A stretch of 64,000 nucleotides of DNA from Azolla caroliniana (Eukaryota; Plantae; Polypodiophyta): positions 1,860,001 to 1,924,000 of the forward strand of contig JBHGNT010000006.1 in assembly GCA_043228905.1 (NCBI GenBank), read 5' to 3'. Below are positions 861 through 44,700 of this stretch, in pieces; the first letter of the stretch is position 1, and each line of letters starts with the position of its first letter. A program made the translations under genes and the position numbers. Under the pieces are notes generated by a model. That model saw only the letters and a program-made list of their open reading frames with translations, was not told the DNA's origin and searched no databases.

Positions 861-2753
861 ATGGGTGCATCAAGCCTATTGTTAGGTACTCCCCTGTGCC
901 TACAAAATCAATCACATGAAAGGGGCTATGTGAACACATCATTCTCAGCAAACCTAGATACGTTGAATCTGGATACAATAAAAATCACTACTTGGGAATC
1001 ACTCTCTACTGAAGAGGTGATCAATTTCTTGGAAAAGAAGCATGTGGAACTACCCTCCATTAATGCCCTTTCAAAGATCTTGTATAAATGCAGAAAGGAA
1101 AAGGATATAGGTTATGCAAGGAGAGCGCACAATTATGTTCGGGAAAATGGTCTCGAATGTCATAAATTTCTTGGGAATTACCTCATCCCAATGTTTGTTG
1201 ATTGTGGGAGTTTAGGTGATGCTCAAGATGTGTTTGATCGATTGGTCTATCGGAACGAGTATGCTTGGTCTTCTCTTATCCATGGATATATTACATCTGG
1301 AGACGCCCAACGGGTACTTAACTTGTATGAACAAATGCAAAAAAATGGTGTCTATCCTAGTGCCTACACATTTTTAAGCTTGTTAAAGGCATGTATTAGA
1401 GTAAAGAGTGTGGAAAAAGGTTGGGAATTGCATAGTCAGATTGTTAACTCGGGATATGAAAGGAACCAACTTGTGGGTAATACTTTGGTGGATATGTATG
1501 CGAAATTTGGATCACTCCTGGAGGCTCAATGTGTGCTTATGAGGATCCCGACTCGAGATGTAGTATCCTGGACAGCATTGATAGGTGGCTATGCTGAACA
1601 TGGTCTCGATGAAGAAGTATTAATTTGTTTAGAGCAAATGAAGCTCGAGAATGTATCGCCAGATGCAGCTTTATACGTATGTAGCTTGAAGTCTTTTAGC
1701 AATGCTGGATCTGTAGCCAGAGGTAGGTATATACACTATGAGGTCATAAAAGTGGGATATGAAAATGACCTCCTGATTCAAAACATTCTGGTGGATATGT
1801 ATGCTAAATGTGGCTCATTGATAGATGCATGGGAAGTTTTTCAAAAAATGCCTTCAAGAAGTGTCATCTCATGGACTACTCTCATTGCTGGTCATGCTCG
1901 ATGTGGTGAATGTGAAATGGTCTTTCAGCTGTTCGAAGAAATGGTGGACGATGGCGTTCGTCCTAATGATACCACTTTCCTCATTCTTCTGTCAGTGTGT
2001 AGCCATGTGGGTCTAGTCGAGAAGGGATCAATGTACTTCAATGAAATGGAGAGAGAATATGGTATCAAACCGAGTTTAAAACATTATAATTGTATGCTTG
2101 ACCTTCTCAGTAGAGCTGGCCAACTCAATGAGGCAATGATGATGGTAGAAAACTTGCCTTTGTCGCCTAATCTTGTGACATGGAAAACAATCTTGAGTGC
2201 ATGTAAGAAGTGGGGCAATGTCGGGATTGCCAGAAAGACCTTTGAATGGGCTGTGAAGATGAATGAAAAGCATTCCTCGATTTTTATGCTGATGTCCAAC
2301 ATCTATACTGATGCTAATATGTGGGAAGACTTGAAGAAGGTCAAGGAGCTACAAGCTCATTTGGGTGTTGGTGAGAATATCGAGAAAAGCTGGATTGAGG
2401 AAGGAAACATAGTGCATAGGTTTGTGGAAGGAGACATTATGTATAATTGGGACGACAAGATTTGGTGGAAACTGAATCAACTTCAGTATAGTGTAAAGCA
2501 GAGGCAAGCAATGGATTCATTAAATAACGAAGATAGCCATTTGAGTCATTGTGAGGAGATTGCTATCACATTTGGTCTACTCAATTTCTCTGAGAAAACG
2601 CCTTTACGTGTTGTGAAAAATCTCTGGCTTCATGAGAAGTGCCATGCCTTTATGGCACTTACATCTGAGGTTGAGCATAGAACTATAATTTGCAGAGATA
2701 TCTTCAAATTTCACGTGTTCAGGGATGGGAAATGCTCTTGTGGTGCTCGATAG
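861..2753 (+). CDS. PLS-class PPR protein with E1/E2 and variant (WW-type) DYW domain
   Basis: 630-aa ORF with about 11 L/S/P motifs (VVSWTALIGGYAEHG, LVDMYAKCGS), E motifs, then KSWIEE..VHRF, KIWWKL, HCEE, KNLWLHEKCH and CSCGAR end. Confidence 0.93.
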   Translation: MGASSLLLGTPLCLQNQSHERGYVNTSFSANLDTLNLDTIKITTWESLSTEEVINFLEKKHVELPSINALSKILYKCRKEKDIGYARRAHNYVRENGLECHKFLGNYLIPMFVDCGSLGDAQDVFDRLVYRNEYAWSSLIHGYITSGDAQRVLNLYEQMQKNGVYPSAYTFLSLLKACIRVKSVEKGWELHSQIVNSGYERNQLVGNTLVDMYAKFGSLLEAQCVLMRIPTRDVVSWTALIGGYAEHGLDEEVLICLEQMKLENVSPDAALYVCSLKSFSNAGSVARGRYIHYEVIKVGYENDLLIQNILVDMYAKCGSLIDAWEVFQKMPSRSVISWTTLIAGHARCGECEMVFQLFEEMVDDGVRPNDTTFLILLSVCSHVGLVEKGSMYFNEMEREYGIKPSLKHYNCMLDLLSRAGQLNEAMMMVENLPLSPNLVTWKTILSACKKWGNVGIARKTFEWAVKMNEKHSSIFMLMSNIYTDANMWEDLKKVKELQAHLGVGENIEKSWIEEGNIVHRFVEGDIMYNWDDKIWWKLNQLQYSVKQRQAMDSLNNEDSHLSHCEEIAITFGLLNFSEKTPLRVVKNLWLHEKCHAFMALTSEVEHRTIICRDIFKFHVFRDGKCSCGAR

Positions 2754-18426: not shown

Positions 18427-21400
18427 ATGGAGGATCAAATGGAAACAGGGGATGGTTATGGTGGTGGTGCAGATCAGAAATACACAGGAGTTGATGGCTC
18501 TGTAGAAGTCTTGACATCGGGAGTCCCTGCTGTGGTGATGGAATCATCAACTATTTTTCCAGATGATGCCACAATGACTGAGAACCAACCACAATTCGAT
18601 GCAAATAATAGTACTCTTGCTGTCGATACAGGTGTTGAAACACAACCTCATCTTGAAGACCCTACAGGTTTGATTTTATGTTTTTGTATTTGTGTTTTAC
18701 AGCATTTTTTCCATCTGTGTCATGAGTGTTTAGATTTATGGGTTTAGAGTTGTATGTGTGATGTGAAACGTGTCGTTTGGTTGTCAAAAGTTTATTATGT
18801 CATGAGAAATTAGGGAGTTTACTTTGTTATGTGATGAGACCCTACAGGTTTGATTTTAGGTTTTTGTATTTGTGTTTTCCAGAATTTTTTCAATCCGTGT
18901 CATTAGTGTTTAGATTTATTGGTTTAGAGTTGTATGTGTGACGTGAAATGTGTTCTTTGGCTGTCAAAGTTTATCATGTCATGCAAAATTAGGGATTTGA
19001 CTTTGTTATGTGGTGTATTTCTTGTATACTTGGCTATGTTCTGGGCTGCGCCTAGGAAATTAGTTATGCCAACATTGATTTGACTTTTTTCATTAAGAAA
19101 TGATTATGAGAGTGGTTAAAATAAGTAAGCATTTTTATTTTATTTGGAAAGTTGTATTATCTTTTTTCACAGCATTATTATGAAGTGAAATTCATTTTAC
19201 CAACAGCAATTGCTGTATGATACTTTCCACAATGCTGATGAGTATGGATCAATTATAGCCTCTGGAAACTATAAATACCTATCCTCATATGTTTTCTGGT
19301 CCTATTCACATTCCAACACAAAGAACTCTGTCTATAACACAAAGCTCCTGGTGGACTGTTATTCAAAGCAACTGAAAGCTTTATCATTAGTAAAATATAT
19401 CCAAATAAATATTACTTTTTCTATGTCTTCAAGTTTGTCCATGTCCTAACTGTAGTCTTTGGGTTTGTTCTTACAGAGGAGGAGAGATTGTGGAGCATTG
19501 TAAAGGTTAATACTGCAGACTTCACAGCTTGGACTGCACTCATTCAAGAAGTAGATAAATTGGTGTGGCTTCTTTCTTCTATGTAGTATGGATAAAATAG
19601 AGTTGAGATTCGTGGCCGAGTTTCGGCTTGCTGAACATTATATATAAGCCTGGCTGTGTTTTAGTTTATGGTATAATTATGTGTATGTATATATTCATTG
19701 TTGATTTGGAATAAGACTCTCGTTTTATTATGAATCTTGGATGTGCTAGATGTCTCTTGACAAAGTGGTATATAAGCATGTGATGAAGTCTTATTGTGTA
19801 TCTATGTGGCAAATGTCATGATTTATAGGTTATTGTATCTTTTGTTTCTATGCTACTAATATCTGATTTAAAATTTTTCCATTGCAGGATATTATAGAGA
19901 GAATTCAGAGGGTGTATGACACCTTTTTGTCAGAGTTTCCTTTATGCTATGGGTACTGGAAAAAGTATGCAGATCATGAAGGTCGCCTTGGAACCCATGA
20001 AAGTGTTATTGCAGTGTATGAACGAGCTGTTCAGGCAGTCACTTACTCTGTGGATATTTGGACACACTATTGTTCATATGTGATTAGCAAGCAGGAGGAT
20101 TCCAATGATGTTCGCAGGTATACTAGGCAAATTCTCATTGTCTTTGATGTTACTTGGTTTCTTCATTTGCTCATTGGCAGGCATGAAATTGTATTTTGAC
20201 TTCCTATTTGGAAATGGTTCCAAAATCCTTGTATCTTGTTTGGAATGCCTGCCATTCTTTCTAACAAATGGTTGGTATTACTGCAGCTATTGGTTCTTCC
20301 TATTTTGGCTATCAGGCGAGACGGTTTGGCCTATTTGGTTGCTTTAGAACAGTTATTCTTTTCTTTTTGAAATACTTTTTTATGTGTGTTTTTATATATG
20401 TGATGTTATTAGTGCATGTTATGTCACCAAAGTAATGTAGGCTAGTCTTACTTGAATCTATAGAGGGTCTTTTTATATCGGACATACAACTGAACTATGG
20501 TGCTGTGGAAGAACGAACTCAATGATCCAATGAGGCTGTGAACACCATTCCATGTTGCGGATATAGTATATTTGTGCAGGAAGGTAAATGTAGCACATTT
20601 GTGCACATTTTTGGCAGTATCAAACTGATCTTGCAGTGTAAAATTTCCATCTAATCCAACTTGTAATCCAGGCTTTTGTGGTTTGAAACATGCCCTCAAA
20701 CTTTTGCACTAATTTGATCACATCATAGTTAGATAAGTCTTTGCCTCCTTGATTTGCAGGCTCTTTGAGCGTGGCCTTTCGTATGTAGGGACTGATTACT
20801 TGTCCCACATATTGTGGGACAAGTATTTAGAATTTGAGACAAGTCTGAATGACATCAACCGTATTTCTCAAATTTATACAAGGATCATCCAAATTCCCAT
20901 CCAGCAGTTGGATAGATATTACCATGGGTATGTGGCTTTTACTGATGAGTATTCCTTTCAATTGTATGGCTTTTGTCAGATTTATCACTTCATACATGTA
21001 TTGTTTGTTAGGTACAAGCAATTTATATCTTTGCACACACTTGATGAACTTCTAACACCAGAAGAAAAGGCAGAATATGGAGCAACCAACTCTTCAGGTG
21101 CTGATGGAGAAACAGCAGAGGGTGTAGGATCAGAAGGTGAAGTTGGTGGATCTAATGAGGTTTCTATTGACAATAAAGGCTCCACCAAACCTGTTCTTAC
21201 AGATGAAGAAAAGTTTGTGAAGTTTAATCAGGTAAGAGAGGAAATGTATAAGGCAGCTAAAGAACAGGATTCCAGAATCGTTGAGTACGAGTCAGCAATA
21301 CGAAGGCCTTACTTCCATGTAAAACCTCTTGATGATGCCCAACTGGCAAACTGGCATAACTATCTGGACTTTATTGAAAAGGAAGGAGATTTTTCTAAGG

Positions 21401-24400
21401 TGATCTTTTTCATTGAACGCTTATCTGAGTGGCCTAAGTTACCTGATGTTAATTCTGATTGTTTGAGAAATATATTTGCTCGATTTCAGGTTGTAAAACT
21501 GCATGAGCGTTGTTTAATAGCATGTGCAAATTATCCAGAGTATTGGATTCGATACATTCAGTGCACAGATCTTGAAGGAACCATGGAATATGCAGCGGAT
21601 GCATTGTGTCGAGCAACACAAATATTTGTAAAGGTTAGGAGTTGAGCAACTGGTTCTTTTATATTTCTTATGAGTAGAAAGGGATCAGGCTTAATCTTTC
21701 GGTGTTTGCTGATAAATTTCCATTTGTTTGAGCTTGGAAACTCAAAACAATGGTCACTTTGTTGACATAAATTTCAATTGGTTTGGGCTTGAAAACTCAA
21801 AACATTTCAAGGTACCATTCATTTAATCTCTGAGATATTCTAGGAGACAAACTTAGCCCTTTACCCAGCAACCAAGTACTTAATGTGATCTCTGCTTCTC
21901 AAATTGACTCATCTTTATTTAATTTTTGGGAACTTCGAAAGCCTGAGCTATAGGTTTAATGTTTAAAAATGAACAATGTATGATTGATTTTAGAGCCTAA
22001 TCCAGTCAGTGGCTTTTTATTGTAACAAGCTGCATGTCGAGTAAACCTTCTTGTCTTCTAGGTATTGGTTATTGCCTAGTATATTTGTGAGTTGAACACA
22101 ATAGTGTAGCAGCGATACTCTTTTCTGTTTGAAGTATGATCAAGGCAACAATCATGAAGTTTTAAAATTGGCTCGTGTTGATGAACTGAGCAAGAGTATT
22201 TGTTTGACAGAGACGTCCAGAGATTCACTTGTTTGCAGCAAGGTTTAAAGAAGAGCATGGAGATATTGATGGTGCTCGATTTGAATATGAATTATTAAAT
22301 TCAAATTTAGCTCCTGGTCTCCTTGAAAGTGTAGTTAAGGCAGCTAATTTTGAGCATCGGCAGGTACATGATATCCAGTGTATATATAATTTATCATATC
22401 TTCTTTGGAAGCTACAGTTATTCTTATAAGCTTTATTTTTCAGGGTAACACAGAAGGTGTTTGTACAGTATATACATATGCCATTGAGTATGAAAAATCA
22501 AAAGGCGAGTCACGATCTCTACCGTTATTGTTCATTCAGTATGCTCGCTATCTTGATCAGGTATGCAGATCCATAGTATTCTTGCAAGTTAATATCTGGT
22601 GTGGGCATTATTTCTTTTAGGAAATGCTTTAGCATCTATATATGAGCATCAAATAGTAATTGTGGCTATCCATTGATAATTCGGGCATTTAAATCTTGAA
22701 AACAATTCATGAGTCAGATATATCTGATCTAATCCTGGTTTTCTTATGGTTTAGGTAGCAATGAATACAGAGAAAGCTAGGGAAGTCTATGCAGTCAGAT
22801 GTATCTGATCTAATCCTGGTTTTCTTATGGTTTAGGTAGCAATGAATACTGAGAAAGCTAGGGAAGTCTATGCAGATGCGTTGTCTTTGTTACCTCTGTC
22901 AAAGATACTCTGGGAGGTATGAAATCATGCATTTATGTTCATTGCTCAATAGCTATATGCTCAAGTTCTCCTGTTTATAAACTGTGTAAGACAAATTTTG
23001 GTCTTTTGGCCTGTTCACTGATGTTAAAATACTTTTCCGTGTTTTTCATTTCAGGCATTGATTCATTTTGAAGCTTATCGATCAGGGCCAAAAGATATAG
23101 ATCGATTGGATACGCTTATTGAACAAGCTATTAGTGCCTCCAAAGCTGATGCTTTGGTGATGAATCCTATGGACAGAGAAGAAATATCAAGTATCTACCT
23201 TGAGGTGAAGGTTTTTGCCACTTTGCTGTTTCATGTTATGATGGCATGAATAAACTCACATTCTAGTTCTTAAAAGTATACATGGTTACAGTTTCTTGAT
23301 TTTTATGGGGACCTGCCAAGAACAAAAAAAGCAGAAGCTCGACATATGCAACTCTTCCCACTAAGGAAAAGTGGCAAAGAATCAAGAAAACGTTCTTTAT
23401 CTGATGGTGCTGCATCTGAAAAAGCAAAGGTTCTGAAAGCTTATGGCACAGCTGTTTCACCCAGTAATGCGGTAACTCCAGCTCTTGCTAATGGTCAGGC
23501 TCAATGGAGTGCTGCAGCATATGGCCAACAAAGTTATGCTCAGCCACAGGGTTGGCAGCAACCACCTTCTGCTCAGCAAGCCCCTCAGACACAACCACAA
23601 CAATGGAATGCTGGTTACAGTACTCAGCAGGTAGGGGATAAGACAAGCGTAGTATGTGATCAATCAATTCAACAAAATTTATAATGTAACTAGTTATTAC
23701 TTGTCATCCTATGCAAAAGGATTAGGTTACTAGCCATGCATAGTAGCTATGATTAATATACAAAATCTATGATGCAACTAGTTATTGTTGTTATCCGAGG
23801 CTATCACTGATCGGGTTATTTGACATCAGCTATATGATGAATTGAATGAAAGCTATCATGTTGTAAGTTGCTACTGTCATTGTAGGCTGGCTATAATCCT
23901 TACGGAAGTTATGGGACATATCCGCAACAGCAGGCAGTGGCAGCTCCTACACAACTGCCAGCTGCTGCCGCATATGGTAGCTACCCACAGAACTACGCAC
24001 CACAGGTACATTGCATTTTGTCATTATCTGTTGCTTATCAAGAACTAACAAAACTGTGCACTTCAAGATATGATATATGTTCAGATAAAAGAAAGCTATT
24101 CTGCGAATGCCCATGTATGAAGAATATGCACTTTCTTGTTATTTCCATTTAACAATACAATTCATTTATGAAGAATAAACGACACTGCTTTGTTTGATGG
24201 CATGTAGCAATACCTTTTCTTTACCGAGAATACGCAGCATTGTTTATTACATGTGGTATTATAAAGAATACTCTATTTTGTTTGATGGCATGTGAGTATA
24301 CATCATACTTTTCAATAATACACTGGTTTGTTTAGTCATGTTCAAACACTAATTTGTTTATGAAGAAAGTGTTTATTTATTAGAATGTGATGATAATATA

Positions 24401-26375: not shown

Positions 26376-26652
26376 CATTAACACTACAATACCTCCACTT
26401 GTTCTTACAATTCCCATTAACACTACAATACCTCCACTTGTTCTTACAATTCCCATTAACACTACAATACCTCTACTTGTTCTTAGAATTCCCATTAACA
26501 CTGTAATACCTCCGCTTGTTCTTACAATTCCCATTAACACTACAATACCTCCACTTGTTCTTACAATTCCCATTAACACTACAATACCTCTACTTGTTCT
26601 TAGAATTCCCATTAACATTGTAATACCTCCGCTTGTTCTTAGAATTCCCATT
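26376..26652. repeat. 39-bp minisatellite, 7 copies
   Basis: Unit CATTAACACTACAATACCTCCACTTGTTCTTACAATTCC. Confidence 0.97.
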
Positions 26653-27274
26653 CCTCTGGACAATGGCCAAGGTGCCTATTAATACCCTTTGACAAGCTCG
26701 TGCACATCAACACTTGGCATGCCAATGAATGGGTAACAACAACGTTTCAGTGGGCACCCAATCTGTTCCCTCAGATTGTATAGCCCCTTCACAATGATTC
26801 ATACACATATATGAAAGTCAAGTGTTGGAAAGATAGAGGACTGCAAGGAATTGAACTCCAAACCTCTTGAAACACGTGGGATGCCCATGACCTTACATTA
26901 CGGTGGTTCGATGATATCGGATCATATTCTTTACCCTCAAACCATATAAATTCAATAATCATGGATGCCTTTGATAATAAGAGCCACTCAAGACATAGCA
27001 TTCTCTTTACCTTCAAACCATATAAATTCAATAATCATGGTGAATGTGTCTAATAATGAGAGATACTCAAGACATTGCTATGTGTGTTGCCGGCATCACA
27101 TTGGATGGAAATAAAAGAAGGAACTGAGGGGTGCCATAAGAATTAAGCGAAGTCTTGGGGGGTCATCGATGGAAATAAAGAAAAGGTCGGGGATTAAGCG
27201 AAGGATATGAATACTCATTTCAGTGCGTCCTCTGGTTCTCTCGTTCACACGTCTTCTTCTTTTCTTGTTTGATC

Positions 27275-30200
27275 ATGCAGGGGCTCCATCTTTCCTTTGC
27301 AGTCTCATCTCAGCAGACAGTACTAGACCTCTGCCATAGCCAGCAAGATCAAAGCATTCAACTTCAGGAACACGCACGTCTGTATCAAAACATTGAACTA
27401 CATCAAGATGACTTCGTCATCCTTCCGTCTAATAGGCTTGGAAATTCCCCCTTTCGCTTTGATACATCAGGTGCAAATTTAGAGTTAAGATTTTTCCAGT
27501 TTACTTTGTTTTTTGATATTGTAATCCACAAGTTTACACATATCGTGATCTCTAATTTGTCAAAGTATAACATTTCATGACCTCTAATTACACCTCAAAG
27601 TGAAACATTTCATGCTCTCCATATCCATTTTAGCTTTCCAAATTTGGCACATTTCATGGTTTTGCATTCCATAACCATTCAATTTATAATGTTTCAAATC
27701 ATCCGATCTGTAATTTTGCAGAAATACAACATTTCATGTCATTCAATCCGAAAATTAAAATCCAAGATTTCATGGTCTTCAAATCCATAATAACCCAATG
27801 TTCCTTTTCAAATTCTCACATTTCATGATCTCAAAAACGACACCTTTTCAAACTGCGTCATGTCATGAACTCCAAAGCCATGAACTTTCAACATTGCAAC
27901 ATTTCATGATGTTTAGAATCCATGGAAAGCTACATGCATTTTCTAGTTAACTTTCAATGCTTGGAGTGTCAATGGATGTTTGTAATATGCTTTTATTAAC
28001 CGCTACTGCATAATATCTTTAATGATGGCTTGCTAAACGCCATGCTTTTCAAAATGCAACATTCCACAATGTCCAAATCCATTGTCATGTTCTACCGTTT
28101 GATTTGCTAAAGTTGAATGGGTGTTGGTAATTTCTGGGGTAAGATGTTTTATTAGCATTACGCTCATAGGATCTAGAAGATAGCATTACGGTCATAGGAT
28201 CTAGAAGATAGCATTTAGCTCATAGGATCTAGAAGATAGCATTTAGCTCATAGGATCTTGAAGATTGTAAGCTGAATGCAATGTTTTCAAAGATGACCTT
28301 AATTATCATCTTCATATTCATAGAAAGCCATCTGCATTTTCTTGTTAGATTTTGATTCTTGCAGTTTCAGTGGATTCTGTGATTTGGCTTGTAAAGAATG
28401 AGTTATAATCTTTTAGTAGTTAATATCTTAAAGATGGTAAGGTAAATGCTATGTTTTTTAAAGTACAATATTTCATTGTATTCAAGTCCCTGGAAATCTA
28501 TTTCCTTTTCTTGTCAACTTTTGATTTGTGAATCTTCAATGCATTCTATAAGATGCAGCACAAACTTCTAGCAGATGATATCTTAAACATGCTGAAATAA
28601 AGGCTTTGTTTTTCTTATTTTACTGTCAGACGGAAATGGGGTTTTTCAGCATGCAGGACGCTTGCCAAAAGACTGGCCTCCTGATTCCTCTCAAACCGTC
28701 CATCCCCAAGTATAACTTGCTTTTCGAGAAAAAGAAAAAGAATTTCAAGATGATCAAGTTAAGATAACTTTGCTGAGTTGATCTGACAGTCCTGTAATGC
28801 CTTTCTCAGATTGATTATTCAAACGGTCGAGGTACTGTCAAGAATGATTGCGTCAGTGGACATATATCTGAAGATGGTTTGCATTTCACGAATGCAAAAA
28901 GCAGTGGAAGCCTTGGTTCAGTTTGCTTTCATGGAAATTCAAGCTCAATTAAGGATGTAGACCATCTTATATGGTGGAAAGAAGGCTCATATGTTTGTCC
29001 TCCTAAGCTACAGAACTTAGGTGAGACACATCATAACTTTACACTTGACCTTTCTGTTGATGCAACTCAACTAAGAATTATTAGTGATGCAAAATCTTCC
29101 CCGTTTTGTCAAAACATTGCATTGCCTTTGATCGATGATTATGTGCGTGCTATACAAGAACTTCGAAAAGTAAAGAATTTGCCCTTGGCCATGGATATAT
29201 ACGCACATATCTGTAATTATGGCTTAGAATCTTGCAATTATGTTGGTAACCATGTGGTGCCTATGTTTGTTGAATGTGGAAGTTTTCCTAATGCACTAGG
29301 GGTGTTCTATATCTTACGTTCGCCAAATGAGATTTCATGGACATCCATAATATTAGGATACATTGATTGTGGTCAACCGCAAGTTGCACTTAACATGTTT
29401 CAAAAGATGCAGAACAGTAGCATTCTTCCTAGGAGCTATACACTTGTAACCGCTCTAAAAGCTTGTGCATTTCTAAAAGACTTGAAACAAGGCCAAAAAA
29501 TTCATTCCCAAGCTATGGAAAATGGATTTGAGCAAGATAGCTTTGTAGGGAACAGTTTAATCAGTATGTATGTGAAGTGTGGTTCCATTCAGCATGCACA
29601 AGGGGTTTTCAATAAGCTTCTGGATCGAGATGTTATATCATGGACTTCATTAATATCTGGATACGCTGAGTATGGACCTTGGCATGAAATATCTGTTTGT
29701 CTTGATCAGATGCAAATTGAGGGCATCAGTCCAAGTGTTGTCACAGTTGCATGTAGCTTGAAAGCATGTGGTAAATTTGAAGATTTAGGAAAGGGACGAC
29801 AAATACATATGGATATCACAATGAAAGGATTTGATGAAAATCTTTATATTGGCAATGCGTTAGTTGCAATGTATGGTAAATGTGGATCACCTTCAGAGGC
29901 ACTTGTAGTCTTCACCAAATTGCCTAATCGGGATGTAGTGTCATGGACAGCAGTTATTTCTGGCTATGCTGACCATGGACTTTGGCAGGAATCACTAGAA
30001 TTGTATGATGGGATGCAACTTGAGGGAGTTGTTGGAAATTCTGTCACATTTACTTCCATCTTGAAAGCATGTAGTGGCATGGGTTCTATTCAGAAAGGTC
30101 AAATGGTTCATAAGGAAATAATTCTCAAAGGTTATGAGAAAGATCTTTCAATCAGCAATACCTTGGTGAGCATGTATGCAAAATGTTTTGCATTTCCGGA

Positions 30201-31755
30201 TGCACATCAAATATTTGATTTGATTTTAGATAGAGATGTTGTCTCTTGGACCTCCTTAATTGCTGGCTATGCTGAACATGGACTTGGTCATGAAGCATTA
30301 TCATGTTTTGAGGATATGAAATTTGAGGGCATTAAAGCTGATGCGTTTACATTTGCATGCGGCCTGAAAGCTTGTGCTTCTGTTGGAGATCTGGAAAGGG
30401 GCAGACAAATGCATGTAAATATACTAGATGAAGGTTTAGCTACAGATGTTGCCGTTGGCAACATGTTGGTGGACATGTATTCGAAGTGTGGAGCTCTTTC
30501 AGAAGCACGGGAAGCATTTGATGAGCTGCATCACAAGTCTATTGTATCATGGACTTCGCTAATTACAGGATATGCTGAAAATGGACCTTGCTTAGAAGCA
30601 CTAAGATGCTTTGAACAAATGCAATCTGATGGTATTTCTCCAAATGCAGCCATACTTTCTAGTGTTTTGAGAGCTTGTGGGAGCATAGGAGCGATACATA
30701 AAGGGCAGTCCATACATAAGACACTGTCTCAATATGAATTTGGTAAAGACCCTTTAGTAAGCAATGGTTTGATCAGCATGTATGCTAACTGTGGCTCTCT
30801 TGTCCAGGCCCAAGAAGTTTTTGATCAGATGGAAGTTCAAGATGTATCTACATGGAGTACAATGATAAAGGGATATGGAGTGAATCATGAGGGTGAAATG
30901 GCCGTAAAATGTTTCCATGACATGCTTAAGCAAGGTGTAAGTCCAGACGCTGTAACATTTACATGTCTACTTACTGCATGCAACCACAGTAGTCTAGTTG
31001 ATGAGGGATGGGCATTCTTCAAGATCATGAGACAGGACTATGGTATTGTGCCAATCATAGAACATGATGTGTGCATGGTTAGCCTTCTTGCAAAATCAGG
31101 CCATTTGTATGAGGCAGAGATGTTCCTTGAGAGATTATGCTCCTCCTCTCAGAGGACATGGGCTGCCCTGCTCAGTGCTTGTAAAACATATGGAGAAGAG
31201 CAACTAGCATTTAGATGCTTCCAGCGGCTCGTCCAGATAAATCCGAATATTGCTGCTTGGTATGTTCTCATGGCTGGAACTTATGCAGGTGCTAGCATGT
31301 GGGATGATGCTAACAAACTAGAAGAGCTCAGACGGTATGCGGGCATACTAAAAAAACCTGCAAGTGCTTCCATTGAGGTTAACAATCAAGTTCATGAATT
31401 TTTTGTGGGAAAAAATCAAAATGACAAAATTTCTAAGGTGTTGAGTACGATGAGTTCAGACATGAAAGGCGAAGGACATGTGCCTAATGTAGATTTTGTT
31501 CTAAGGCCATTTTCTGATAAGAGAAAAGAATCATTGCTCTGTGAACATGCTGAAAAACTTGCTATTGCATTCGGACTCATCCACACACCACAAGGAGCAA
31601 CATTGCGTGTGACAAAGAGTTTAAGGATGTGTAATGATTGTCATGATGTAAGCAAAATAATCTCAAAAGTAGAGCACAGGGAGATCATTATACGAGATGA
31701 CTGCAGCCTTCATCATTTCATCGACGGATCATGTTCTTGTGGTGATATGTTTTAA
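27275..31755 (+). CDS. PLS-class PPR protein with DYW:KP domain, candidate U-to-C RNA editing factor
   Basis: Main exon open from 28810 to 31755: about 20 PLS motifs, E1/E2, KKPASASIEV, GHVP, CEHAEKLA, RMCNDCH, CSCGDMF. Upstream exons 27275-27470 and 28630-28709 join in frame (~1073 aa) but are less certain. Confidence 0.92.
28153..28265. repeat. 28-bp tandem repeat x4 in PPR intron
   Basis: Unit TAGCATTACGCTCATAGGATCTAGAAGA with minor variants. Confidence 0.95.
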
Positions 31756-33057
31756 CTGCAATGCTGTCTCAGACTACAGAAATTGATTAGCTCAACATTC
31801 ATCTACACCCATGGTCTCTTGCATTGGCTAAAACAGATTCTCTGTATATATTGAGAGCTTCCTTTGCTCTTGACATTTTATTAATATATCTGAGGCTAAA
31901 GCTATATGGTCGCATTGACTCTATTGGAAATGTTGCAGTACATGGGTTCAAGTGCTTTGAGCATTTTCCACACACCCTGAGTCAAGTTTACTGTACTAAT
32001 AAAATTTAGACATTTTTTTGTGCAAGTTTTTATCATGGAAATTGGCCAGAAATGATGCTAGCATCACAATGACGTTTTTATTGTTAGCACCATCCTCCCA
32101 GTATTCTTGCTTCCTATTATTTCTATTATGTCAACTGGCCTTTCTCTTATTTACTTTATGTGGCAGGATAGTGTCAAGAATTGTTCTTCAAGAACTAACA
32201 TCAGCTTTATCTTGTATTTTTATTGTCATGTCATAGGTTCTATTTTGAAAAGTATATCACTAAGATTATCGCAAGCTTCATTTCACAAAACAAAGAGCAT
32301 GTGCAACACCAAGAAACTACCAAGTTTCTTATTCTCTTCTAGGGCGAATATGGATTGAGAAAATTATGTTGAAGAGGGGAAAGAGAGAATGTATTAAGCT
32401 GAAGTATGTGGAGGTCTATCAATGTGAAATGCTAAGTAAATAAAATGTTGTTAATCTGAGTTGAATGCTCAAAAGCCTGGTTTTCGAATGAACTACACAA
32501 CTAATTGCTTGCATGATGCTCAATACCAGGTACTAGAACATACAATGATGGATTTCTAGATTTATCGTTTTTTATCTCATAGAGACATCAAAACATAACT
32601 TCTTTTAAAGAGTGATACTATGAAGTAGAAAAATGGTGATATTGGCAACATATAGGAGAGATTGACAGTGATCGTCCCTTAGTCATTTGTCCAGAAGAAA
32701 CACCATCTTTTGGTATGATTAGTATTTCTTGCATTGATGTTGTACCAAGTTATTGTCATAGGAAGCTACCAAAGATTCATATGATAGGGATTTCTAGAAT
32801 GTTGTTTGTCTTTCTCACGTCAATGTTGTATTCAGTTAGTGTTGTCCAAGCAAACAACTAAAGGTTCATGCAATTGCTTCCAACACGTGAATGGTAGTTA
32901 AAAGGGTAGTCATGGCTGATTAATGACCACGGATAATAATAATGGCACCATTTATGTATCTCAAGCCCTGATTACACAGATACAACACACATTTTTCGTT
33001 TCTCACAATTAGATTTCTTTGAGTTTAATATTTGACATAAAATTCTTGGGTTGATTA

Positions 33058-34448: not shown

Positions 34449-37400
34449 CTAACGGATACCCTCTTGCCTTTGCCTTTTCACGTGTCTTCTCTTATGACGT
34501 CTCCTTCTGATGGCAATCGCCAAATCATTCGGAAACAGCGTTCCCATGCAGGCATGAAGAATGGTGAAGACAAAAAGGATAAAAGTCGTAACAACTGAAA
34601 TGAGAGATAATATAACCGCAAGAATCTGAGGAATCACATGGTGCACCTCCATTGAGTATTCGATCGTGGCAATGGCTGATGATGCCATTGGAAATGTATA
34701 TGCCCACCAAGCAATTGAAAACCTCGAAACACATGCAAATAATTTATAGCTTCCTTTAAACTTCCATGCAAAACATCACAATGAGAATGATCTTTGATAC
34801 AATAAAAATGAATTTATCAATATGCACAAGGTAATGCTTTCATATAGGTACCGGCAACTCTATCTAATATATGCTTGCAGACCATATTATGCAGACCAAA
34901 TCAATGAAACCTATCATAATTCAATTTGCCAAAGTTATCGTTCATTAGCATATCTGTGACAGTTCTTTTCTTGCATGCCTCCATTCTACACTAGACTTAA
35001 TGTTATATGCACATCATAATGACATCGAGATCAATGTGACACTAGAAAATATAACTACAACCTTACACCAAAGGCGAGCTGTGCATGAGAAAACTGGCTA
35101 GGACAATGATTACCCAATCCGTAAGTTCAAAACAATTGGGGACACATTAATAAGCCCACACTACTAATAGTTACGCCTAATCTTATATCCATTATACTTG
35201 GGGACTCCTGAGAATGTAGTTGTGCATATGTTCATAACCATGGATATGTATTCTGCATGAGCATAGCTTTGTTAGAGATTTGTAACAGAAAATTTATATA
35301 TGAGATTTCAAATATTTGTACAAGGAAATCTACTCAACCCATTATGGAATCCACATAATATTGCCACTATTCATTGACTCCAACGCATATTAGTTTAGGG
35401 TTGGAAACACTTTCACCTGAATCCACAGAAGAAGTTGAATCGAGAAACCTGTTGCACACATCCATCTCGAAAACATTATCAAGCCACTTCCATAAACCCA
35501 ATCTAAACTACAAGCAAAGAGCATACACGCACATACATACAGATTATGTCTTTCTTTAGCTCTTTTCCAAATTAATTATAGTTAAGACACCATAAACAAA
35601 ATGTCGAAACTGAATCTAAATAGGACCAAAGAACATACATTCATACACACATTGTATCTTTCTTTAAAAAATATCCTGATGAACTCACCAAGGAAGCATA
35701 AAGGAACAATGCTATGAAGTATGGAACTCTCGAGACACGATCGAAGCTGCCGGAGATAGCTTTCCATGAAATGCTTGCTGCACTAGGGGCAGCAACAAAG
35801 AGGAAAAATATAGGGTGGAGCTCTTTGGGAAGAAGCTCGGCAGTCGGCAAACGTTGATAAAGAGTTACAAAGACAACCATATAATGTGCACAACCTACAG
35901 CCCATAAGAAGAAACCAGGCTCCTTCCAACCGACCACTGCTGCAAGCAATGCGCTCACAAAATACCCCGCTAGTGAAAGATGAATAGATGGATTTGCTAC
36001 ATTTGATAGCCTCCTCTCTCCCCCTGAAGGCCACTGACCATGTATTTTCAAACTTAATACTAACAATGGTGCCACTAATACACACCAAATAACTGGATGG
36101 ATGGTCGAAGCTATTCTTGGAGGGATTCCCAAAAGTAGAAACATACAAGCTATCCATGGAGAAAATACGAAGTTTACTCTCACCGGATGATAGTATTCAC
36201 GCCGTACTGCCTCGAAATATAATATGCATTTCATAACATATACAATAGAGATGATGACAACGGAAGCAGCAGTGATGCACCATAAAAGGAGGTTCACAAT
36301 GAGAGGTACCTTTAGAAACCTCATGGATGAACTTGTGGCAAGTGACTTCCAAAGCATTGTCTGGCTTCCTAATCCAAGGCATATACCATAACATACTATC
36401 GGAAACCGTAGAAGAAATGGCCACTTCTCATCAGGTAGAAGTAGTGGCTCCTCTGGGTCCTATGAAAATACATAAAACATCATTCACGTGAAACGCTCAT
36501 ACTATAATTAGCAATAAAGGCTGACATTTCAAGTAGAAAACTTATACTACAATGAATAAGATACATTCCAAAGTTCATATCATAATCACCAAGAAAGGCT
36601 GAATAATTCAAATAAGATGACCGTCATACTACAATCAGCAAAAAAGGTTGGTTGTATTTTAGTAAAAAACTCGTACAACAATCAATAAGAAAAGCTTATC
36701 TATTTACTACACTACTAAACAAGATCATAAAACACATGGCTTATGATTACATATTGAAGAAATCCTGTTCATTGATAACTGCAATTCTGATTGTCATTGA
36801 TGCAAGCTATATATGTATCCAAGCAGAATGTGTAATAATCACCTTTACCACTTTCAAAATGAGGGCCCTCCACTGCATCAAGGAAAGTTTTCATCAACAC
36901 AAAATCTGTGTTTCTGTGTGGAATATCACATCGACTTATAGTAAGCTTTAAAACCTAAATAAATCAGGGCCTCCAATAAACCAAAGTCTCATTTTTTTGT
37001 ATCTTATACGTATCTATTGCCAAATGTAATAACTTTAATTTACTACCTAAAAATTGGTGCCTTCCAATGTATTGAGTATCATTTTTCTATGCATATCTAG
37101 TCAGCTTTAATGCATCAACATTGACTCTCACTAATGCGCCAAAGTATCATTTGTATTGAAATACATCCTGACATGTATTTATGCAGAATGTGTGATAATT
37201 TATGGGTTCCTCAATGAATCAAAGTACCATTTCCTGTTGTGCAAGTTTGATATGTATATATGAAGAATGTAACAAATCACTTTCAATACTTCCAATGCAT
37301 CAAAGGATCATTTTCACCGGTGCATGTTTTATATGTATATGCCAGGAATGTAACAAATCATCTTCCATACTTCTGGAAATGTGTCCAAAGATCATTTCAT

Positions 37401-41743: not shown

Positions 41744-44700
41744 TCATGAGTCTGTCCTTGTGCTGCCCACCGCTAGATCTGAAATATCTATTTTGGAACC
41801 ATTTTGCCACTCTTGTATAGTTCCACTCAAAGGATTCTCTCCATAACTACTTAATTGCCATAGTTTTTCTTCGACCTCATCCAAAAGTTGTTGCCAGCTC
41901 CAAGCCGAATGTCCTAAGAAAAACCAAAAATCGGAAATATCTAACTTGTTCAACTCTTTAACTGATTGCAAAACTTGCATCGTTGCTAATGTGTCTCCAA
42001 AGTATATACCAGGAACCACCTCTAGGTACCCCTCTACCCCTTTTAACCTAGTAAGGCTTACAAAAGGCTGTCCATTCACAAGGACTGGCCCTCCATAGGA
42101 AAGAACAGTGTTGTTAAAAATCTCCTCTACTACACTATCTACTATATTCCGCAAGAGCTTCCACGATGATAAAGGTTTGTTTAGAATCACTCCTTGGAAC
42201 CCTTCTTGCCCATCTGCTTTAACAATCCAAATTCTCGAATTCTCAAATAGTTTGGATGCATTTGCGTTGAGCTTCTTTGTAGCTACAAGCACCGATCCAA
42301 CTTCTGGGTACATTAAGTTTGTTGAATCATGGTTATTGACAGCAATATTATCACCTTGAGATTCCGAACTCTTAAAAGATGGGTTTTCCTTGGCTGTATT
42401 TGCTGTCAAGTGATATAAATGATGTGCACGTTCTGTACGAGCGTCAATCCAGACTGACTTCGATGATAGAGAAGTGGATGAGGATGTTTGAGATTTCAGT
42501 TCTTCATTGAATCTTTTTGTCCCTACTTAATCGACCACATCCATGAAGTTCAATACAATCAATGTTAAATTTCACCACCAAATTTGCTCACAAAACAAGA
42601 TGCGATAAATGTAGCATTCTACGAATAATTTGACCTGTTTTGCAGCTGAGCTAGTAAAACTCTTGAAATGAACGCACACATATATATACAAACATACAGA
42701 TACATGTAGAGAGAAACATAGAAATAAGAAGGTTACCTTGAAGCATATGAAGGATTTTTATGTCGATATTGCTTTCACGAAAAATAAATTCCAATGCTTG
42801 TTGCACAGTCGGTCCTCCGTTAAAAATGATTTTAGCTTTTCTTTTTGGTGAAAATAATATGATTGAGGGGTACAATTCCTACAAGATAAAGAGGAAGAAG
42901 ATCAGGAATGTTTACATGTAGTTGGTAAAACACACATGACGTGATTACCATCTCATCATCAATTAATAAACCAAGATGAGCATAGACTGTACATTCTATA
43001 AGCCACCATGATAATCTTCCTATGATGACTGTATTCATCCACCTCTAAATGAAAGGAAGGATGAATATTTTTTGCTACACATATGTACAAAGCGATCGAC
43101 AACCTGTTCAAGATCCTTGAAGAATAAACTGCAGTCATTCATCGTACAGTCAATCTGGAAAAGGACAGGAAGCTTGTCTTTCAATTCACACCAGCAATCG
43201 TGCGAATAGCTCACTGAAAGTATATAAATGTCTGAATAAGAAATTAAATTTCAATAAGCAATAAAAATCCACAAAACAAGAGTACGGCATTTCCCAGGGT
43301 TAAAATATGCATATCCTCCAGAGTCTACCGCAATCAGAATAATACAAACTCACAACATTCTTGATTCAATTATAATTTACATTAAAAACAAATTCCATGA
43401 GCAGCATTATCTTTGATTAGAGAATGCAGAGCTCGACAAATTGTCACGCAAACTGTGTTCTACAAGTGAATCTATGTATATATTCCCAGTTTGTTACAAC
43501 TTTATGTGAGTACATGAAATTGGATATATTGGATCTAGGCTTCCGAAAATTCCAATTCTGTGGAGAATGTGTAACGAATCGATATTCTTGTAAAAATGGA
43601 AATGTGCCTAATATTCTCGAGAGTAAATTGCCTTCTAAGTTATAATTTCAAAACCAAAATGTATCTTCAAACCTTTACATTAAGTATTTATGAATTTCTT
43701 CCTCTTATACGCACAATTGTAAAGAGTTTGTTTACAGTTATTTTAAAAAACTAAAACAAATACAGCCTGTGAATGTGTCAATACATGCATTGCCACAAGA
43801 GTCCTATGATTAAATGGCAGAAATCGTCTCACCTTTATCTTGAAATTGATTCCATGCGCCAATAACACAGTCAGGTTGCTTTCCATTTCCATTTTGTCCC
43901 ATGCCTCTGTCTTCAAGATGTGCACCCACATGCAACATTAATAACTGATATATCTCACGAAAGATCAATTCCATTCTCTTGCAAAAACCACATGCAGACA
44001 AGGTGAAGTGTACAAGGATTCCTCGCTTGCTTAAATCTGAAGCATTCTCTATCGGCTGAGAATCAACTAGCATTTCCAACAGAGTTTCAACTGTGATCTG
44101 AGGGACTCCATTCATTACATGGAAGTCCCGATTGACAAATGGAGGTTTGACCCGTTTTCGAGGACTCTGTGGTTCAGACCCTGAATTGTAAACTCTTTTA
44201 AGAGAGCCTCTAGAGAACTCATATATGAATTCCTTTATACTTGAATAGCTTATAGACTGATCAATAGGGAAAACAAAGTGTCCACCTTCAGATGGATCAA
44301 GTATCACAAGAGATGGATAGGGCACATTTTGCAAAAGCATGTCTTTCATTGAATCATCTCCATCTACACAAAAGTATGACAAGGAATGCACATAACTAAG
44401 GTTTGCAGGGTTCTCAGAAACCCTTTCTTCCTCAGGATCAATTGCAGATGACATTTTCATCCTCTGTCCGCTCGATGACAGAGAAAATACAGATCCTATG
44501 TCCACAAGGGATGAAGGAATATAGTCAAGATCAAGTTCTCCGACATGTCTCTCATTCTGAGCCTTATCCAAAACAGCATTACTTTGAGAGACAAGAGCGT
44601 CCTTAATACCTAGAGCTTTAATTTTTTCAGATGGCATTTTCAACAGGCTTGCTTTTAATTGCATTTTTGCATTGCCAAGCAAAACCTTCAAAACTATGGT

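Follow-up and report, generated by a model that had tools for sequence, protein, structure and literature searches.

The window analysed here is a 64,000-nucleotide (nt) stretch of the genome of the fern Azolla caroliniana (contig JBHGNT010000006.1, positions 1,860,001 to 1,924,000 of the forward strand), and all coordinates below refer to it. Between 27248 and 31995, on the + strand, lies a gene of three exons that encodes a pentatricopeptide repeat (PPR) protein with a deaminase domain at its C terminus. By sequence and phylogeny, this domain belongs to the DYW:KP class. The gene itself is a nuclear fern gene that is intact, transcribed and spliced. Its features are given below, where P0001 is a transcript-derived protein of Pteridium aquilinum and 9kfx is a synthetic PPR-DYW protein of solved structure.

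27248..27470, + strand: exon 1, with its 5' limit set by the contig evidence; supported by contigs of X1, X2 and X3, which span 27248/27265/27275..27466 and run on over the joint
27471..28629, + strand: intron 1, 1159 nt, GT..AG, with zero contig depth
28630..28709, + strand: exon 2, 80 nt, coding
28710..28809, + strand: intron 2, 100 nt, GT..AG; joint 28709>28810 in runs X1 and X2
28810..31755, + strand: exon 3, coding part, 981 codons and the stop at 31753-31755
29131..31152, + strand: PPR tract of 20 motifs, from the fixed-length parse, Pfam PPR families and gap-free collinearity with P0001
31153-31254, + strand: E1, from the parse, Pfam E_motif and alignment to E1/E2 of 9kfx
31255-31353, + strand: E2, from the same three sources
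31354..31752, + strand: DYW:KP domain, 133 amino acids (aa), from motifs, profiles, structure alignment and tree
31354-31359, + strand: KP box, a landmark of the DYW domain, as are the next five
31546-31554, + strand: H65-A66-E67
31615-31617, + strand: Lys88
31627-31629, + strand: Met92
31630-31641, + strand: C93xxC96
31744-31752, + strand: tail D-M-F
31756..31995, + strand: 3' untranslated region, minimum extent; contigs reach 31995 (X14) and 31946 (X3)

The exons were joined to check the frame, and the coding sequence of 196 + 80 + 2943 nt gave a protein of 1073 aa. As expression evidence, Logan contigs from four runs, belonging to four studies, were aligned to 26500-32400. The first joint was found at 27466>28626 in all four runs, and shifting the cut by +4 nt gives the canonical GT..AG boundaries, i.e., 27470>28630. 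Exon 3 was covered without break to about 31995 and contig depth was about zero beyond 32016, while across intron 1 and both flanks it was zero in these four runs. The spliced joints and the zero depth in intron and flanks indicate that the runs represent RNA, and therefore that the gene is transcribed and spliced; its expression is directly supported. Within intron 1, at about 28157-28262, a unit of about 27 nt (…cataggatctagaagatagcatt…) is repeated in tandem about four times. One contig of run X3, from the related organism C, passes the exon 2 donor into intron 2 as far as 28755, which suggests intron retention or another donor in species C. Retention of intron 2 would introduce in-frame stops.

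The start codon is the ATG at 27275-27277, with an in-frame stop 25 codons upstream. Contig evidence for exon 1 begins at 27248. The initial annotation had described 28810-31755 as an intact protein. The whole gene is indeed open and spliced, but this interval is exon 3 only; it lacks the first 92 codons and holds no in-frame ATG before 29191. The ATG at 29191 was rejected as the start: the open frame extends a further 131 codons upstream and conservation with P0001 already sets in 27 codons ahead of this ATG, so that the start codon must lie elsewhere. Two ATGs in exon 2, at 28636 and 28651, were also rejected, since they are out of frame with the PPR reading frame.

The N-terminal region of about 200 aa is non-PPR. 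Database and domain searches took exon 3, not the joined 1073-aa protein, as the query. Pfam matched many PPR repeats, the E motif and DYW_deaminase (PF14432), the last with E = 2.8e-36 over positions 1-92 of the 93 in its profile, all within a frame that is open from 28810 to the stop. A fixed-length parse resolved the motif order as L-S-(P1-L1-S1)x5-P2-L2-S2 and then E1 and E2, of 34 and 33 aa respectively, with no indels. This is the layout of the PLS-class editing factors, in which P1-L1-S1 triplets (35/35/31 aa) lead to P2-L2-S2-E1-E2 before the deaminase. The architecture is therefore directly supported, and the parse agrees with the initial annotation, which had counted about 20 PLS motifs followed by E1/E2. 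At 29685, inside a P1 motif but not at a specificity position, the genome has T (CAT, His), whereas the contigs of 4/4 runs have A (CAA, Gln). The T at this position would seem to be either a variant private to the individual that was sequenced or a fault of the assembly.

The DYW:KP class is recognized by KP in place of PG, HAE in place of HSE, loss of xHP (132/133 aa as against 136 aa), Met92 in place of Val95, and a variable C-terminal triplet that keeps Asp; a conserved Lys88 is essential for uridine-to-cytidine (U-to-C) editing (PMC9478123, PMC11845758, PMC11332814). At the position of the PG box, our domain reads KKPASASIEV from 31351, with the KP pair at 31354. The HxE motif is HAE (in CEHAEK), and HxE(x)nCxxC is intact with CNDC as its CxxC. 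The domain also contains the strings EGHVPN, TKSLRMCNDCH and, at the C terminus, CSCGDMF, and K88 and M92 both lie within TKSLRMC. Counted from KP the domain has 133 aa, and its 3-residue gap relative to PG domains and PDB 9kfx falls exactly at the PG-type 'shp'. The tail D-M-F keeps the Asp, and GDMF was found in 11 of the 19 nearest fern KP proteins. All four canonical marks of DYW:PG domains, namely the PGxSWIE box, HSE, xHP and the terminal DYW, differ here. The residue at position 89, beside Lys88 (31619), is Ser in the genome and Asn in most contigs and most fern KP relatives (TKNLRMC), although some of the contigs with Asn may be paralogue-derived.

Searches and trees gave the same picture. 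When the E2-DYW region was searched against the database, 20 of the 21 top proteins carried the same signature and seed-plant PG-type proteins ranked after them; the named KP-type relatives were all ferns (Pteridium, Ceratopteris and Adiantum). A maximum-likelihood tree of 62 DYW domains (IQ-TREE) placed the domain in a fern KP clade with HAE and 133 aa (ultrafast bootstrap 100, SH-aLRT 98), apart from the PG clade (100/98), and a quick tree of 120 rows gave the same placement. Clade profiles, which were built without the query from the clades of this analysis and are not the published Gutmann hidden Markov models, gave the domain 229 bits on the KP-HAE profile, as against 181 on PG and 169 on KP-HSE, the last being a second fern subgroup, which combines a KP box with HSE or HCE and retains xHP. 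The margin of KP over PG is thus 48 bits. The initial annotation had read KKPASASIEV, HAE, GHVP, CNDC and GDMF from 31351 onward and assigned the domain to the DYW:KP class. All of these strings are present there, and the hallmarks, the tree, the profile margin and the fern relatives bear the assignment out. It had also asked whether the domain clusters with the PG clade; by both tree and clade profiles it falls outside that clade. The class is therefore directly supported.

From these features we consider that the protein is probably a site-specific organellar U-to-C editor, in which the PPR tract would target one uridine and the KP-type site would convert it. The protein would enter an organelle, and the PPR tract would bind about 20 nt just upstream of the target uridine, with S2 placed over position -4. 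The zinc-dependent KP-type site, formed by His65, Glu67, Cys93 and Cys96, would then convert the uridine to cytidine. In the current crosslink model, Lys88 attacks C4 to give a Schiff base that is hydrolysed to cytidine (PMC11332814, PMC11713852, PMC11845758). The initial annotation had called the amination mechanism largely unresolved, which somewhat overstates the gap, since this model exists. The KP clade has a distribution that parallels U-to-C editing (PMC9478123). The lineages with U-to-C editing in their organelles are hornworts, some lycophytes and ferns. We infer organelle import, the identity of the target, and the direction and completion of the reaction.

There is another possible interpretation of the domain, in which the protein is a bidirectional or mainly C-to-U editor and the KP-type site still performs the canonical zinc-dependent deamination, as in the designer protein KP6. 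KP6 derives from this fern subclade, and its C-to-U editing has been seen both in human cells and in vitro. All the residues for deamination (His65, Glu67, Cys93 and Cys96) are present in our domain, and it aligns to PG-type structures with E = 2e-59; this value belongs to 9kfx, and 7w86 (DYW1) and 7o4e (OTP86) were also matched by sequence, with E-values ranging to 4e-27. However, Lys88, which in KP6 restrains C-to-U editing and is needed for U-to-C editing, is also present. E64 and F133, mutation of which shifts KP6 toward C-to-U editing (PMC11845758), are kept, and the distribution of the KP clade follows U-to-C editing. We therefore regard a mainly C-to-U or bidirectional activity as quite unlikely.

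The relationship to other fern proteins was analyzed on the basis of full-length matches. The best of these was P0001 (EukProt EP00250_P013580), with 61% identity over 881 aa and zero gaps (BLASTP). In the full-length tree, the Azolla protein, P0001, the Logan transcript P0002 and Ceratopteris richardii KP509_04G095300 (P0004) form an orthogroup with an SH-aLRT of 100, and their alignment has no gap columns over the PPR tract. The 13 P and S motifs carry two specificity residues each; of these 26, 22 are identical in the orthogroup, whereas the PPR tract is only 52-58% identical overall. The remaining differences are conservative (TR/TK, TS/TC and NS/NT). Other fern KP paralogues share 14-19 of these 26 residues. 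The conserved recognition residues and the gap-free alignment imply a conserved target, so that the orthogroup would keep a common RNA target across ferns. A rough ratio of nonsynonymous to synonymous differences (pN/pS) against contigs of a related species was 0.24, a value calculated from 36 of about 115 differences, to which paralogue contigs may have contributed.

In the PPR code, which Barkan is said to have described in 2012, residue 5 and the last residue of each motif reportedly specify the base. With S2 set over -4, the code predicts the element 5'-nYnnURnUA(g)UG(g)YA(g)UGnn for positions -23..-4. Only 11 of its 20 positions are specified, and the code is too degenerate to name a target from it. 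Such degeneracy makes site assignment unreliable (PMC13263110). The predicted element is therefore a lead, not a finding.

The conservation of the recognition residues bears on a further reading, in which the protein is mainly a catalytic donor in trans. In this case, the DYW:KP domain would be recruited by DYW-less PLS/E+:KP proteins and its own PPR tract would be secondary. Full-length DYW:KP proteins are far fewer than the U-to-C sites in ferns, and trans action has been proposed to be dominant (PMC13263110). Known donors such as Arabidopsis DYW1, however, have few or no PPR motifs, whereas this protein keeps 20, and its specificity residues are better conserved across ferns than the rest of the tract, which points to a target specific to this protein. 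Both roles can also coexist. A role mainly as a donor would therefore seem to be unlikely.

It might also be supposed that the gene is decaying or inactive, i.e., an expressed relic with a dead deaminase. Fern PPR families hold many degenerate members, one of which lies in this window at 861-2753 and has lost its CxxC pair, and substitutions private to the genome relative to the transcript contigs do occur, such as His for Gln at 29685. On the other hand, the 1073-codon frame is open across three exons, every catalytic and zinc-binding residue is present, and the gene is spliced and expressed in four studies. The gap-free alignment to the orthologues and the rough pN/pS of 0.24 point in the same direction. 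Decay of the gene is thus highly improbable.

Outside this locus, the gene at 861-2753 (+) is a second PPR-E-DYW gene, which starts with an ATG and encodes 630 aa. The DYW domain of its product is degenerate, with EKSWIEE as the box, HCE for HxE, another residue in place of the first Cys of CxxC (LHEKCH) and CSCGAR as the tail. This domain is probably non-catalytic, to judge from these residues. Exon-sized open reading frames with Pfam matches were also found at 20749-21645 (+, PRP39 HAT repeats), 35641-36357 (-, SLAC1 anion channel) and 41744-42409 (-, AlgH-like DUF179). These matches indicate that the KP gene lies in an ordinary gene-rich nuclear region.

Several points weigh against a site-specific organellar U-to-C editor. 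Besides the proposed dominance of trans action, the degeneracy of the code and the limits of the pN/pS estimate, inspection of the N-terminal 30 aa found no basic residues, and a transit peptide is not evident there. Characterization of native fern DYW:KP enzymes has not so far been possible (PMC13263110). KP6, a consensus design from the fern clade, edits both C-to-U and U-to-C in human cells (PMC9478123). Furthermore, the reaction of the synthetic KP enzymes stalls at an RNA-protein crosslink, and U-to-C editing has not been reproduced in vitro. We nevertheless regard site-specific U-to-C editing as the probable function of the protein.

The stalling of the designs leads to a more specific proposal. 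Studies of reverse editing have up to now relied on DYW:KP proteins of consensus design alone, the designer proteins assayed being KP2, KP3 and KP6. The possibility has been raised that native sequences under selection might behave unlike the designs (PMC11332814). It is possible, although we put it forward only tentatively, that this orthogroup is a native site-specific U-to-C editor that finishes the reaction to free cytidine unaided, unlike the stalling consensus designs. If this is the case, a first native factor-site pair for reverse editing would come within reach, since Ceratopteris is a model fern, and a natural enzyme would be available for resolving the amination chemistry. The lack of native factor-site pairs that the initial annotation had pointed to still holds for ferns, where no native factor has so far been paired with a site (PMC13263110).

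DYW:KP is a described class, catalogued in fern transcriptomes and genomes, and this gene is a natural specimen of it, not a new system. The present analysis adds the verified three-exon model, the expression evidence, and an orthogroup that extends to Ceratopteris and shares a conserved code. The conserved recognition code narrows the search for a target, and the gene is a useful reagent and a testable lead.

Among the closest known systems is KP6 (Ichinose et al. 2022, PMC9478123; 2025, PMC11845758), and its 133-aa numbering fits our domain exactly. The two proteins agree at the KP box, E64, H65-A66-E67, K88, M92, D116 and the terminal F133, and the P2-L2-S2-E1-E2-DYW layout is common to both. 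At the published KP6 positions, which were compared in place of a full alignment, our protein has S6, I113 and L119 where KP6 has L6, L113 and I119. Unlike the designer KP6, it is the product of a natural gene with its own tract of 20 PPR motifs. The orthologues of Pteridium and Ceratopteris have the same motif count, no indels from the PPR tract through the DYW domain (874 aa) and the same HAE/133-aa domain, with 54-61% identity. They differ in the box, EPASAL as against KPASAS here, and in the tail, which is GDIF, GDLF or GDNF as against GDMF, and the N-terminal regions do not align. These orthologues are annotated as hypothetical proteins or not at all.

The hornwort DYW:KP proteins of Anthoceros (DRH and GRP subgroups; Gerke 2020 and Gutmann 2020, cited in PMC9478123) share the KP box, HAE and the association with U-to-C editing, whereas their tails are DRH/GRP as against DMF here. 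In the published phylogenies, the KP domains of tracheophytes and those of hornworts fall into separate clades; our own tree was built without hornwort sequences. The canonical DYW:PG C-to-U editors (OTP86 7o4e, DYW1 7w86, the synthetic 9kfx and PpPPR56) belong by sequence to the same fold family, and they share the zinc ligands, the catalytic Glu and the PLS-E1-E2 scaffold. The match of our domain to the solved DYW structures is unambiguous at the sequence level. Relative to these editors, our domain shows the changes PG to KP, HSE to HAE, deletion of xHP, V95 to M92, xNRF to DCSL and DYW to DMF.

The second fern subgroup, with a WKKPAKAFIE box, also has KP at the box position and is sister to the HAE clade within a non-PG group supported at 98. 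Its members (P0022, P0023, P0025, P0027, P0041-43, P0057, P0060, P0062, P0065 and P0067) have domains of 136 aa that retain xHP, mostly with HSE or HCE (HAE in P0060), and highly variable tails with no GD[MLI]F. Our protein scores only 169 bits on the profile of this subgroup.

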